64,000 nucleotides of DNA, taken from sequence record NC_015251.1, one strand, 5' to 3'. The notes under the pieces are model-generated. The model did no database searches. It was given only the letters and a program-made list of their open reading frames with translations, and was not told the DNA's origin. Numbering within the stretch: the stretch's first letter is position 1; every line of letters begins with the position of its first letter. Shown in pieces: positions 20,905 through 25,827 of this stretch. The translations under genes and the position numbers were made by a program.

Positions 20905-22080
20905 TCAACTTCTCCATTTAACAGGAACATAAAGTTCTGGATACTTACAAACTACCTCTACAATCTGATCGACTGTAACAGAGCCACTTTGAAACATCTT
21001 CATCGCGATACCGAAATATTGACGATCTTCCTTGAAAGCATCCTGCATTGCGATTGCGAAATCTTTACGCTCCCGACCTTCAACCTTTTTATACTCGGCT
21101 TTCAGTTTAGCCAAGGTATTACTGATTTCACTAACAACGTGATCCTCAAATTCGCGGATCTTTGTTAGAGATAACGTATCGTCAATAAATAGCTGACGAA
21201 GGTCATCAGACGTACCATTTGCAACTGCGCAAACCAGATCCTTATTGTTGGTGATAGAATCCTTGGTCTTGTGAAGCAAGCAATATGCATGAGTCTTTAC
21301 CTTCACGCGAGAACCGTCCTTGAATACAAGCACATACCCCTCGATACCAGTCTCTTCATACATCGATTTAACGCGAGTCTCAACGTCAGTATCCTCAGAA
21401 AACATGAACTGATCTACGGAATACTTTCGGAACACAGGGATACGAACCAGATCTGAATTTGGATAATACTCACCGGATTCACGATTGCGAACGTTCAGGA
21501 TCTTCAAACTCTCTTCTTCGTAAGCAATAACGATTTGATTCTTTGGACTGCACCACTCAAGGTTAACTGTATATCCAGCGTCTTCGCAATCTTGAATAAA
21601 ATTCAAAAGGTCTTCGTGATTATACAACCAACGATTTGCATCATTCGCCTGATCACTATGAAGAGACGTTTTGCTTTTCAGCATATAGTTAACACGGTCT
21701 GATTCTGGGTCTTTGAAGCTATAAGAACTCATCAGACTACCATCTGCTTTATCTTCGTAGCGGTCGATTTGGTCATATTCCAGAACCGGTTTATTCAGGC
21801 TGGAATATTCACAATCTGTCAAATTCCACGCTGTACGTTCTGCCAGATTGAAAAACTTCTCCATGGGACGGGACGCGATCCGTACAGGTTCCCCGTTTTC
21901 CATTTCAAACATGATACCACGACACTCAAGCGCGTCTGGCTGCATCCATGAGGTAAGCCCTGCGATGTGGTATGAGAACACCCGCATATGGTTACCAAAT
22001 GACGTATATTGGTCTTTGAAGAAGAAATTACCTTCACCATTATTGCATAGGTTTACTAAGTTATTATACAGATTTTTCAT
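20905..22080 (-). CDS. rnlA: T4-like RNA ligase 1
   Basis: ECRGIMF, RPMEKFFN, motif I KADGSL, NLEW, EGYV and KVKT. Confidence 0.95.
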   Translation of the reverse strand: MKNLYNNLVNLCNNGEGNFFFKDQYTSFGNHMRVFSYHIAGLTSWMQPDALECRGIMFEMENGEPVRIASRPMEKFFNLAERTAWNLTDCEYSSLNKPVLEYDQIDRYEDKADGSLMSSYSFKDPESDRVNYMLKSKTSLHSDQANDANRWLYNHEDLLNFIQDCEDAGYTVNLEWCSPKNQIVIAYEEESLKILNVRNRESGEYYPNSDLVRIPVFRKYSVDQFMFSEDTDVETRVKSMYEETGIEGYVLVFKDGSRVKVKTHAYCLLHKTKDSITNNKDLVCAVANGTSDDLRQLFIDDTLSLTKIREFEDHVVSEISNTLAKLKAEYKKVEGRERKDFAIAMQDAFKEDRQYFGIAMKMFQSGSVTVDQIVEVVCKYPELYVPVKWRS

Positions 22081-23372
22081 TTTCTAATGCCCATTTTGGG
22101 GGAATAGGATTCATCCTAATCACTGAATTTTTAGGTATAGTTTGTTTAAACTTAACTATATTTCGGTTTATATTTACTTTTGGTCGCAACTTAGAAGCCG
22201 AACACATCAGCATAGTCCCAAATTGATAAATTTGCAGTCTTTTACTTCCTGCTCGGTCATTTCGAACTCGTAATATCCATTAATCTTATGGCGAGTCATA
22301 CGAGTCATCATTTCAGCAACCCGAGATAGAACACCAGTAATAAGTTCTAGATGTTCAACATCCAATTCATTCATTTTAATTTTCATTATATATACCCCAA
22401 AACAATTTCCGGATCCATTTTTGACAATAGATTTTCAGTTCCAAAATGGTCAATAACATCTTGGATTGTAAAGTGATCCAGTATATTGTCGTCTCCGAAA
22501 TATCGGACAATTTCACGAATTCCCAATTCGTCTAGAATCGGTTCCGGATCCATTCCCTCTACGGTAATATATACATTCGAATTATTACAATATCTGCCAG
22601 TAATTTCTATAACGCTGGCTACAGTTTCAACATTAACAGTCTGCATTATGCAAATCTCCGCAGTGTTTTAAATTCGTCTTCTGGGATTTCGATATGTTAA
22701 TGACTCCATACAACATAGCATTTACAATATTTTCAAAGAAATCCGTATCTTCTGGGGTTTGTTCACCGCTGTTGATACGGCTCTCCAACCAAGATGCAGA
22801 AACCCATTCTTTAAGCTCTTTAATATTAACTTGATATTTCATGTTTATTCCTTATACGATTTAATAAAATTCAAAATCTCTTGACAAATTTCGTGCTGAA
22901 ATTCTGCATTTGGATAATATCCATCAAATTCACACAAATCGAAATTAGTTTCTTTCCATGGCAATTCAAAAGCCCAACTAATCATACCTTTTTGAATACC
23001 GCACGATACATAGAAATGATATTTTCCATCATAACACCGAACTTCTCTCAGATAATTCATAAATTCTTCTGGGGTTACTTCATACCATTCTGTTACTATT
23101 TTCTCTCTCGGGAATCGAATCATGATTTGACCTCTTGATATTCGGTATCGTAGTATTCATTCAGAACAGTAACAAATTTCAAATCTTTATGTTTATTTTT
23201 CAACTCTCGATACATCTGACCGATAATGTCAGATTTACCCATACGGTTAGGTGCCCCAAGAATTCCAAGATAATCAACAACTTCCCCCAGCGGAAGTCCA
23301 TCAACAGATGGCGCTGGAAATCGATACATATTACAAACATCCATATCTACAAAAGGTTTCATAATAAATTCC

Positions 23373-23675
23373 TCATATATCAAATAATTTATCGAGTGAC
23401 GGTTCAAAAAGCTTGTTGACAACGTATGCTAAAACATCACCGTGACATGGTTTAGGTTTACAGCAACATCCTAATCGTTTTCCTTCAAGCTCTTTGAAGT
23501 CTTCACGGGTAAGATTACCCGTTCTGATCTGTTCTGTCAACCAAATTTTATACTTTCCTAAAACTATCTGACGGTCTTCTTCTTGTCTAAGTGGGAATGG
23601 ATTTCCCCACTTAGACGGACGCATAATAGGTATGTCACACGGTTCACTATTGAGGTTAACAGCTCGACAAGTCAT
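23373..23675 (-). CDS. DUF4326 domain protein
   Basis: RPSKWGNPF...ELEGKRLGCCCKPKPCHGDVL. Confidence 0.9.
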   Translation of the reverse strand: MTCRAVNLNSEPCDIPIMRPSKWGNPFPLRQEEDRQIVLGKYKIWLTEQIRTGNLTREDFKELEGKRLGCCCKPKPCHGDVLAYVVNKLFEPSLDKLFDI

Positions 23676-24040
23676 TTAATAGTGAAAGTACCTTGTTTTC
23701 CGCATTCGATTGCGTCCAACATGCGTTGATTAAATGGTGGCGGATTGTCAATCAGATCCATCAACATATCCCAAGAATTCGGAGACAGAGAAACTACCTC
23801 GATTAGGTCGGCCTCGTCAGATGGATAACAGTTATCATGATCGTTATCCCACAAGACCCAAACCCACGGATCTTTCTTATCTTCGGGCCAATCTTCATTC
23901 CTATAATCTGGGATTGGTATAACTGTTCCGCTAACCCCAACCGGATTTGTTGGGTCTGTACCTGTATATGCGTATTTACTTTTTGGGTTCAGAATTACCC
24001 TTTGACCAATAGCCATATCTTTATTCATTTTTCTTCCCAC
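23672..24040 (-). CDS. SH3-like domain plus a C-terminal DUF1778 (AtaR/TacA antitoxin)-like peptide
   Basis: IGQRVIL...GTVI...VWVLWDN; C-terminus LSPNSWDMLMDLIDNPPPFNQRMLDAI. Confidence 0.6.
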   Translation of the reverse strand: MGRKMNKDMAIGQRVILNPKSKYAYTGTDPTNPVGVSGTVIPIPDYRNEDWPEDKKDPWVWVLWDNDHDNCYPSDEADLIEVVSLSPNSWDMLMDLIDNPPPFNQRMLDAIECGKQGTFTIK

Positions 24041-24410
24041 TATGAAATGTTACGTTTGCAAGATTCTCAATCAACTCTCCGCATACACTTCGATTTCATG
24101 AGGTTCATCATTTATGACGATAGTATGACGCAATTGACCAAAGTAATCAACAATACCACAGATCCGGTTTTCATTTACATTATATAGAATAATTTCCCAA
24201 CGCTCAAACCCAAACATACTCGGGTCCCCGTATGTATTGAAATTTACCTCTGTATGGGTATATCCTAGCTGGTCTGCAATATTACGCAATACGTATTCTT
24301 CTTGGTCCACAGTCAAGTTATCGTTTTCAATATACATGGTAGTTGTACCACCATCCCCATCCTCAAACCCTTCGAAGTCATCCCAAATATTAACATAAAT
24401 CTTTTTCATA

Positions 24411-24779
24411 TCATTCACCATTAAAATGAACATTCCAGATTGGGCGATATTCCCGAATCAACTTTTGTTCTTCTATATCCAACATCATACTAGATGATCT
24501 CTTAACATACAACCACAAATTTCCATTTTTCATGGTATTAACCATCTTAAGGTTTTTGTCTATGTTAGATCGCTTTGCATTACGCCAATTCACACAGTTT
24601 CGATAAGTATCAAACCGTTTCCAAAGGTCGTTAGCTTTGCCTATATAAAGGACTTTCGTCCCTTTTACAAATGCATAAACCACGTTCTGGTAAAATGTCG
24701 GTATAAGAAATTCGCGAGAGATTAAGCCATTTTCATCCAATCCTAATTTTGAGATCTTTTTAAATCCATCAAGCTTCAT
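24411..24779 (-). CDS. denA: Endonuclease II (GIY-YIG)
   Basis: NVVYAF...VLYIGKA..L.KR..YR...EEQKLIREYRPIWN matches the recalled T4 EndoII pattern; upstream of rnlA. Confidence 0.8.
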   Translation of the reverse strand: MKLDGFKKISKLGLDENGLISREFLIPTFYQNVVYAFVKGTKVLYIGKANDLWKRFDTYRNCVNWRNAKRSNIDKNLKMVNTMKNGNLWLYVKRSSSMMLDIEEQKLIREYRPIWNVHFNGE

Positions 24780-25827
24780 CGATCTCCCTCTTTTTTGATC
24801 GACTTACAATTTTATATCTGGCAAATTCATAATTAGCGCAACAAATAAAAATTTGAAAAATCTGATTCCTAAGTTTGTTACTGTAAGGAATATCTTTATA
24901 TCGGTCTGGATATACGTTGAAACGAAAACAATATACGTTGTGTAGTCGTTGTAGGAATGACTCATTGGTACACATAGTATAAAGTAGGTCTGCGAAAAAT
25001 TGTCCCGATTCTTTTGGAAGATGTTTATCGTAATCATCAATCCATTCTTTAATAACTTCGGAGATTAAATTTCCAAGTTGTGTTCCGTGGTCGGTTTGTA
25101 CACCGTAATCATCAATATAATTCATTATTTTAAAACTCCAATATTTTTTTTCGACTTTAGGATCCGACTAGCTCTCATTAACCTGTTGGTTGACGCTGAT
25201 TCAGATATACAACCAATAACCATATCTCTTACTTGAAGTTCGATAAGAACCAGTTCATCGATGGTAAAATCTACTTTGTATTTTTCTACATACCGTTGAA
25301 TAACATCAGTGTAAATCTGGTTATTTGTTACGATATAACTAAGACTAAGTAATTCAGATAAAAACAGATTAACATCATCCTCTTTATATATATTTTTATT
25401 ATTATATTTTTCATTGATGTAGTTTTCGATGATTATTAACATGTTAACCCCATGTTCATTCCATCTACCGTTTTCATTATAAAAATAAAACATAAATATA
25501 TTTCCTATTTCAAACGTAAATCTAACCGATTGTAAGAAGACCACATGATAACTTCAGAAGCGAGAATTTCATATGCCTCACTGTAATAAGTTGGCTCGTA
25601 TATTTCTACACAACTTTTGTTTTCGTGTATATTGATAACTTTGTACAAATGGTGTGGTTGCTTTAAAATATCAGATATAATACGACCGATTTTATATAAA
25701 ATTTCATCATCCTGAGATGTACTAAATTGGTATTGTAATTCCGCATATTCTTTAATGTATGAACTACAAACCGCCATCAATTCACCAGCTTTTTCGTTGT
25801 AAGAAAAATCGGCTTGGTCACTAAAAA

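Follow-up and report, generated by a model that had tools for sequence, protein, structure and literature searches.

The subject of this analysis is 65p341, a minus-strand gene in a 64,000-nucleotide stretch of sequence record NC_015251.1 (hereafter, the window), which by its coordinate offset is the final 64 kb of the 235,229-bp record of Aeromonas phage 65. Over positions 23000-25000, the window matches phages 65 (GU459069 / NC_015251) and 65.2 at 100% identity and phage avDM6 at 89%. These three T4-type phages belong to the genus Ishigurovirus (Straboviridae, Emmerichvirinae). An open reading frame (ORF) at the locus spans 23672-24040 and starts with GTG (122 aa). The deposited annotations of phage 65 and avDM6 place the start at the ATG at 24028, which is preceded by a purine-rich stretch, and this gives a protein of 118 aa with the locus tag 65p341. 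We number residues according to this 118-residue version throughout. The whole gene (23672..24028, minus strand, including the stop codon; record positions 194901-195257) is annotated as "hypothetical protein" in GU459069 and in avDM6, and it matches PHROG 9469 over its full length.

The predicted protein is a chimera of a beta-barrel and an antitoxin-derived tail, all parts of which are encoded on the minus strand. The N-terminal domain (residues 1-78, 23795..24028) resembles the small MIB/HERC2 beta-barrels of the SH3 fold and occupies the place that the ribbon-helix-helix (RHH) domain has in antitoxins. The tail (residues 79-118, 23675..23794) is a homolog of the C-terminal region by which the toxin is neutralised in DUF1778 antitoxins of the TacA/AtaR/KacA type, the partners of toxins of the GNAT (GCN5-related N-acetyltransferase) class. 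The original prediction for this locus, made from the sequence alone, had proposed an antitoxin-like neutralisation peptide at 23690-23797 (residues 78-113) as the end of the protein. The peptide is present, at residues 79-107, but it is not the end: 11 more residues follow to K118, and these also align with a subfamily of Aeromonas antitoxins.

Homology of the tail to DUF1778 antitoxins

Searches with profiles and with single sequences lead to the same family. Among 24,736 Pfam families, the best match of the whole protein is TacA1 (PF08681; E 0.0043, 17.4 bits). When the 45-residue tail is searched in isolation, TacA1 is the sole match (E 5e-4, 20.4 bits), and the tail of avDM6 behaves in the same way (18.4 bits). 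A check against the DUF1778 profile, suggested along with the original prediction, thus returns the expected family, at a score just short of the gathering score of 21. The match spans profile positions 45-75 of 80, which is the C-terminal neutralising part. Positions 1-44, which correspond to the RHH domain, are unmatched in 65p341, where residues 1-78 form the beta-barrel instead; the absence of an RHH domain had been anticipated. Scans of the phage protein with PADLOC and NCBIfam gave no match. The three best matches among the 177,635 distinct sequences of the PDB are all DUF1778 antitoxins (7zg5_C; 7ak9_C, a 36-residue fragment; and 6gtq_C, a 46-residue fragment), with single-sequence E values of 0.12-0.84. 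The pattern of L, SW, MD and NPP, initially noted as common to the tail and the C terminus of AtaR, was recovered by alignment programs against the DUF1778 chains of 6gtq and 6ajm, two entries for AtaR-AtaT.

The closest relatives of the tail are found on plasmids. In a tblastn search of 7.3 Gb of plasmid sequence, 40/40 of the matches listed fall in DUF1778 genes. The best one lies directly upstream of a GNAT gene on pVA7-1 of Aeromonas veronii (E 4e-3 database-wide), and its product is a bona fide DUF1778 member (PF08681, E 2.8e-17). Residues 79-118 align with this antitoxin by BLASTP without gaps, with 16/40 identical and 25/40 similar positions (pairwise E 3e-10), and with a copy from A. 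caviae at an E value that is likewise 3e-10. The reciprocal tblastn search with the pVA7-1 antitoxin retrieved 9 of 50,697 phage records, among them avDM6 (E 2e-3) and the tails of phages 65 and 65.2 (E 2e-2). When the profile of the two phage proteins was set against that of six subfamily antitoxins, hhalign gave a probability of 96.3% (E 1.5e-9, 39 columns). A hidden Markov model (HMM) of the six antitoxins, searched against all ORF fragments in the six frames of the phage 65 genome (3,677), had the tail as its single match (E 1.6e-6; runner-up E 0.86) and aligned to it through HMM positions 67-104 only. None of 5,000 shuffled tails equalled the real alignment score (z about 16). Pfam, plasmid tblastn, BLASTP, hhalign, HMM and shuffling thus agree with the homology that had been proposed. 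By all these comparisons, the tail of 65p341 is a true homolog of the DUF1778 neutralising region, and chance resemblance is excluded.

The likeness extends beyond the Pfam model. The C-terminal extension (residues 109-118, 23675..23704) is shared with the Aeromonas antitoxin subfamily alone. Its ungapped counterpart in the pVA7-1 antitoxin is residues 96-105, and G113 and I117 are invariant across 7 sequences. The N, P, P and F of the linker are also invariant in the phage tails and in all antitoxins of the subfamily.

The contacts between antitoxin and toxin have been described for KacA and KacT. The C-terminus of KacA consists of strand beta-B (52-56), helix alpha-C (57-70), a Pro-Pro-Ala-Pro linker (71-74) and helix alpha-D (75-86), and it forms a hook that wraps around KacT with high affinity and whose R77 hampers the binding of acetyl-CoA (PMC6698736). 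The disordered C-terminal region of AtaR hinders tRNA binding and the alignment of acetyl-CoA (PMC7758455). In the ungapped alignment of the subfamily profile to KacA (5zgn_A), each phage residue corresponds to the KacA residue plus 25. The helix at residues 83-94 (23747..23782), delimited by the AlphaFold2 model and the profile alignment, is the equivalent of alpha-C, the hydrophobic face of which packs on the toxin, and includes S85, W86, L89, L92 and I93. It is followed by an Asn-Pro-Pro-Pro-Phe linker (residues 95-99, 23732..23746), the counterpart of KacA 71-74, and by a second helix equivalent to alpha-D (residues 100-108, 23705..23731). Five of the nine toxin contacts described for KacA (PMC6698736) are identical in the tail (S60/S85, W61/W86, I68/I93, P72/P97 and R77/R102), and two more are conservative hydrophobic replacements (V64/L89 and A67/L92). 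The AlphaFold2 model has helices at residues 83-94 and 101-106, where alpha-C and alpha-D map. Its predicted local distance difference test (pLDDT) values are 46-66 in the tail and 72-92 in residues 1-80; the low values of the tail fit a region that folds on binding. Judged by these alignments, the tail covers only the toxin-neutralising part of the antitoxin, i.e., the strand, the helix, the proline linker and the second helix.

Evolutionary gain of the tail and origin of its parts

The tail is confined to the three Ishigurovirus genomes. In 5.8 billion proteins, word-based searching turned up only avDM6, whether the query was the entire protein or its tail. An exhaustive HMMER search of 1.84 billion representatives, with the entire protein as query, gave relatives of the N-terminal domain and no further tail-bearing protein. 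Searching phages with the tail by tblastn gave only noise outside phages 65, 65.2 and avDM6 (E >= 1), mostly in clamp-loader genes of Vibrio phages. A scan of IMG/VR with the tail alignment gave, besides phage 65, a single spurious match of 15 residues. This match, in IMGVR_UViG_3300002220_000113, was rejected as due to chance: an 8-residue word identical to part of the tail lies within a 464-aa glycine/threonine-rich fibre-like ORF on an unrelated viral contig.

The sister genus Ceceduovirus has syntenic orthologs (CC2_147, ASswx1_385 and others) in the interval from the denA block to nrdA.1. They measure 75-79 residues and end exactly at the phage 65 junction. Since the small genes next to them bear no relation to the tail, the latter was gained in the Ishigurovirus lineage; an origin by fusion with the next small gene of Ceceduovirus was rejected on the same grounds. 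Within Ishigurovirus, the tail is intact in 3/3 genomes, its frame unbroken by stops or shifts. Phage 65 and avDM6 were compared at a synonymous divergence (dS) of about 0.5. In this one genome pair, the tail has a ratio of nonsynonymous to synonymous substitution rates (dN/dS) of 0.14, and both its residues 79-108 and the N-terminal domain have one of 0.08. It had been stated at the outset that absence of the tail from orthologs would count against the proposed reading. It is indeed missing from those of the sister genus, but it is kept in Ishigurovirus, and the pattern reads as a lineage-specific gain maintained by purifying selection.

The domain that received the tail has its own history. 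Residues 1-78 are mostly beta in the AlphaFold2 model. Matches to MIB_HERC2 (PF06701) are weak but recurrent, at 15-23.5 bits in 65p341 and 6 relatives (cut-off 33.5). The best Foldseek matches are the CPH domain of HECTD1 (3dkm), the MZM domain of Mind bomb (4xi7) and YorP of the Bacillus subtilis phage SPbeta (2heq), followed by Tudor and SH3 domains; all have E >= 0.028, and the CPH/MIB matches have TM values of 0.4-0.6 at a probability of 0.99-1.00. The initial description of the domain as SH3-like is therefore fair as a qualitative account of its fold, although all scores lie below family thresholds. The likeness to MIB/HERC2 barrels, CPH barrels and YorP consists of these weak matches; the barrel of 65p341 is a phage-specific module to which their function is not transferable. 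In Aeromonas and Vibrio phage proteins the module occurs alone, in tandem or with unrelated tails: among its relatives, four are alone, one is duplicated, one has an N-terminal extension and three have unrelated C-terminal tails, some of them coiled-coil-like. None of the other tails matched an antitoxin-like family. As far as its sequence relatives tell, the MIB/HERC2-like barrel is a promiscuous phage module.

The antitoxins nearest to the tail are associated with mobile elements of Aeromonas. The element pVA7-1 (NZ_AP027934.1) was deposited as a 114-kb plasmid, and its gene content is that of a phage-plasmid: positions 9341-65000 of the record include genes for ParA, DnaE, a DnaB-like helicase, Hfq, HU, tail and tail-fibre proteins, and a HipA-family toxin. 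It also has a T4-like td-frd-nrdB-nrdA cluster, with the DUF1778-GNAT pair as an insertion between td and nrdB. At the DNA level, pVA7-1 has no close relative among deposited phages, and the ribonucleotide reductase genes alone match. The annotated toxin ORF has 53 nt in common with the antitoxin ORF, and the stretch homologous to the tail ends <=5 nt from the annotated toxin start, which means that the phage holds the part of the antitoxin that leads up to the toxin gene and does not extend into it. The toxin itself is related to KacT, AtaT and TacT (E values of 6e-14 or lower). A nearly identical antitoxin lies on a 111-kb contig of Aeromonas sp. w55. In A. caviae CECT 838 (NZ_CDBK01000088.1, 124726-131022), a DUF1778 gene of the same subfamily precedes a GNAT gene in a prophage-like stretch. 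The pair is flanked on one side by genes for an HNH endonuclease, a DUF2514 protein and a phage lysozyme; those on the opposite side encode an SRAP protein and an S24 peptidase. Scanning GTDB with a single antitoxin returned nothing, and scanning it with the alignment returned A. caviae CECT 838 only. Two further Aeromonas plasmids (111-113 kb) carry a more distant DUF1778-GNAT pair.

In the host genus, the closest relatives of the tail thus belong to DUF1778-GNAT pairs. Because the closest of these relatives reside on an Aeromonas phage-plasmid and in a prophage-like region, the natural partners of the tail would be GNAT toxins of temperate or plasmid-like residents. Outside Aeromonas, many plasmid matches to DUF1778-GNAT pairs lie on non-mobilizable plasmids of ~105-117 kb in Enterobacter, Citrobacter and Salmonella, and a KacT-type pair is also present in the P1-like Escherichia phages Cyrano and CMS-2020a. 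This family of toxin-antitoxin pairs may often reside on phage-plasmids.

Neighbouring genes and the absence of a phage toxin

The gene 65p341 is flanked by nrdA.1 and by a gene for a protein of PHROG 16852. The ATG of nrdA.1 overlaps the stop codon of 65p341 (23672-23675), which suggests translational coupling, and the layout in avDM6 is identical. In CC2 and Asswx_1, other small genes lie between nrdA.1 and the tail-less ortholog. The product of nrdA.1 (23373..23675, minus strand, 100 aa) is a DUF4326 protein (Pfam E 4e-24) that falls outside the module. We rejected it as a partner toxin because it is not a GNAT protein and nrdA.1 is widespread in T4-type phages that have tail-less orthologs.

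The search for a toxin can be extended to the whole phage. A tblastn search of all phage records with the pVA7-1 GNAT toxin had no match in phages 65, 65.2 or avDM6, and local tblastn of the complete phage 65 genome with two cognate-type toxins gave nothing better than E 0.36. No acetyltransferase is annotated in the phage 65 record. Hence, the lack of an adjacent cognate toxin, noted from the start, holds by tblastn and annotation for the entire 235-kb genome. On these grounds 65p341, which combines homology to a host antitoxin with the absence of a phage toxin, fits the class of phage orphan antitoxins as far as sequence can tell. It is not a DUF1778 antitoxin in the sense of the family, lacking both the RHH domain and a toxin partner and scoring below the Pfam threshold. 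Those elements of the original prediction that are open to a check by sequence all held.

The surroundings say less about function. The gene sits among nucleotide-metabolism genes, in an extended series of small ORFs on the minus strand that is interspersed with td, frd, denA and rnlA, a neighbourhood that is compatible with pre-late expression without proving it. A scan for promoters and terminators found fewer sites than in shuffled sequence and was uninformative. The original prediction had also regarded the tRNA-repair genes of this genome as a fitting context. The rnlA gene, ~1.6 kb away, is standard T4-type content and gives no specific support. Phage 65 has 16 annotated tRNA genes (GU459069 record positions 107957-115331), rnlA (window 20905-22080) and rnlB, which are likewise standard in T4-type phages. 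These genes may bear on tRNA-directed host toxins, and are not specific evidence on the role of the tail. Near 65p341, the ORF annotated as denA (endonuclease II; window 24411-24779) has sub-threshold matches to GIY-YIG and Eco29kI (about 21 bits) and a strong match to PHROG 1111, 'endonuclease'.

A putative decoy for GNAT toxins

We lean, with modest confidence, towards the view that 65p341 is an orphan antitoxin-derived decoy that would bind and neutralise GNAT toxins with a presumed role in defence. In KacA, AtaR and TacA, the hook wraps the GNAT toxin, covers the site for acetyl-CoA and aminoacyl-tRNA and blocks dimerisation. An ancestor of Ishigurovirus may have captured the 3' part of a DUF1778 antitoxin gene, from a GNAT/DUF1778 module of the kind present on Aeromonas phage-plasmids and prophages, and joined it to the end of a pre-existing small beta-barrel protein. 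Because the DNA-binding and dimerisation half was not kept, 65p341 would be a toxin binder only, and not an operon repressor. During infection, expression from the host and its resident elements would be shut off, the labile resident antitoxin would decay without being replenished and the GNAT toxin would be set free. The phage protein could then occupy the freed toxin through the conserved hook, so that aminoacyl-tRNAs would stay unacetylated and phage translation would continue. The N-terminal barrel might give stability to a peptide that is otherwise disordered, or increase the steric bulk on the surface of the toxin.

Several observations weigh against a decoy. The TacA1 score is under the Pfam gathering threshold (21 bits) for the phage 65 protein, its tail and the avDM6 tail, which is expected of a segment that matches just 31 of the 80 positions in the profile. 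The tail and the nearest antitoxin are only 38-45% identical, and type II antitoxins as a rule recognise just the toxin of their own pair. Natural antitoxins are dimeric through the RHH domain, whereas 65p341 would bind as a monomeric hook. Two of the nine KacA contacts are unlike in the tail (N57/S82 and E58/P83). Moreover, the KacT partner of KacA R77 is E110, in whose place the pVA7-1 toxin has a lysine in the alignment, and the R77-type contact may for this reason not transfer. The dN/dS values come from small counts in a single pair. The matching antitoxin subfamily is rare, with 4 protein clusters among 5.8 billion proteins and one GTDB representative, and only three Aeromonas plasmids have any DUF1778 match. 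In limited GTDB and plasmid searches, we did not find the subfamily in A. salmonicida and A. hydrophila, the recorded hosts. Finally, we found no literature linking GNAT/DUF1778 modules to phage restriction, and PADLOC has no model for them.

Some of these points would also be expected if the tail were a domesticated antitoxin fragment that had acquired a new partner, such as another GNAT-fold protein or an unrelated one, or that served as an interaction or oligomerisation peptide of the barrel, with no role against toxin-antitoxin (TA) systems. The lack of evidence tying GNAT TA modules to phage restriction, the failure to find the target subfamily in the recorded host species and the identity of about 40% to real antitoxins all suit this explanation, as does the use of the N-terminal domain as a scaffold for other, unrelated tails such as coiled coils. 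A change of partner would, nevertheless, leave little reason for the positions kept to be those by which KacA contacts its toxin (S, W, I, P, R and the hydrophobic face), for the subfamily-specific C-terminal extension to be retained as well, or for the whole hook to evolve at a dN/dS of about 0.1. We regard it as rather unlikely, though the weightiest of the alternatives. The same constraint speaks against a functionless translated fossil of an old recombination event. That the tail occurs in one genus, that orthologs of the sister genus evidently work without it and that AlphaFold2 confidence is low across it could all be signs of a relic. Yet the dN/dS values of the tail and of residues 79-108 are close to or match that of the N-terminal domain at appreciable dS, the frame is open in all three genomes and low pLDDT is expected of a region that folds on binding, which makes a fossil very improbable.

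The tail might also neutralise a toxin of the phage itself, either a divergent GNAT protein or a non-GNAT neighbour, and form with it a phage-internal TA-like or regulatory unit. The overlap of the 65p341 stop with the nrdA.1 start reproduces the usual layout of antitoxin followed by toxin, and most phage 65 genes have no known function. However, nrdA.1 encodes a DUF4326 and not a GNAT protein and accompanies tail-less, separated orthologs in other T4-type phages, and neither the six-frame search of the phage 65 genome with two toxins nor the tblastn search that covered phages 65, 65.2 and avDM6 gave a credible candidate. This arrangement seems improbable to us. Least credible of all is an accidental likeness, in which a short peptide of helix, Pro-Pro and helix happens to resemble DUF1778. 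The sub-threshold Pfam score and the weak single-sequence PDB matches are what such an accident might produce. An ungapped match over 40 residues with the pairwise and database-wide E values given above, the hhalign probability, the lone HMM match in the phage genome, the shuffling test and the reciprocal recovery of the tail are not, and we consider it next to impossible.

If 65p341 is the decoy that we favour, a broader scenario can be offered tentatively. It is possible, though we would not presume it, that the GNAT/DUF1778 modules of Aeromonas phage-plasmids and prophages are abortive-infection defences against virulent T4-type phages and that the hook on a barrel scaffold is the answer of Ishigurovirus. 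GNAT/DUF1778 pairs are among the commonest type II TA systems and have been studied mainly for persistence and plasmid maintenance.

Phage proteins that stand in for host antitoxins have precedents. T4 Dmd acts against RnlA/LsoA; it is not known to have sequence homology to the host antitoxins that it replaces, unlike 65p341 with its direct homology. T-even phages encode AdfN (T4 gp30.3), an orphan DarG1-like NADAR protein that counters DarTG1 (PMC11825919). Like 65p341, it is the homolog of a host antitoxin in a T4-type phage without the toxin, and capture from a bacterial TA system has been proposed for it (PMC11825919). The two differ in that AdfN is a whole antitoxin and an enzyme that reverses the DNA modification made by the toxin (type IV), whereas 65p341 is a fragment grafted onto another domain that would bind the toxin stoichiometrically (type II). 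The Vibrio cholerae phage ICP1 encodes an antitoxin mimic against DarTG (bioRxiv 10.1101/2023.12.14.571748). This mimic and Dmd resemble the proposed decoy in that a phage protein replaces a labile host antitoxin during infection, and they differ from it in addressing toxin families other than GNAT. With KacA, AtaR and TacA themselves, 65p341 shares the homologous C-terminal 40 residues and most of the published contact positions; it differs from them in having an unrelated barrel for the RHH domain, no GNAT gene downstream or elsewhere in the genome, and a virulent T4-type phage as its bearer. Orphan antitoxins and mimics of phages are therefore already known, and in the literature we found none for GNAT/DUF1778 and none in the form of a neutralising peptide on a foreign domain.

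The retention of a toxin-binding part under purifying selection by a virulent phage that lacks the toxin is indirect, yet pointed, evidence that such toxins matter in infection, and it names a concrete family, that of pVA7-1 and A. caviae on phage-plasmids and prophages. The architecture also shows that the neutralising peptide of a type II antitoxin is separable from the DNA-binding domain and portable on an unrelated fold; screens for full-length antitoxins would miss proteins of this kind. If the broader scenario above holds, 65p341 would be the first counter-defence against toxins that acetylate aminoacyl-tRNA, and a case in which the 'warhead' of a type II antitoxin has been shifted onto a foreign carrier domain. 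In that case, peptides of this sort might be carried more generally by the MIB/HERC2-like module, which is joined to a variety of tails in phages of Aeromonas and Vibrio.

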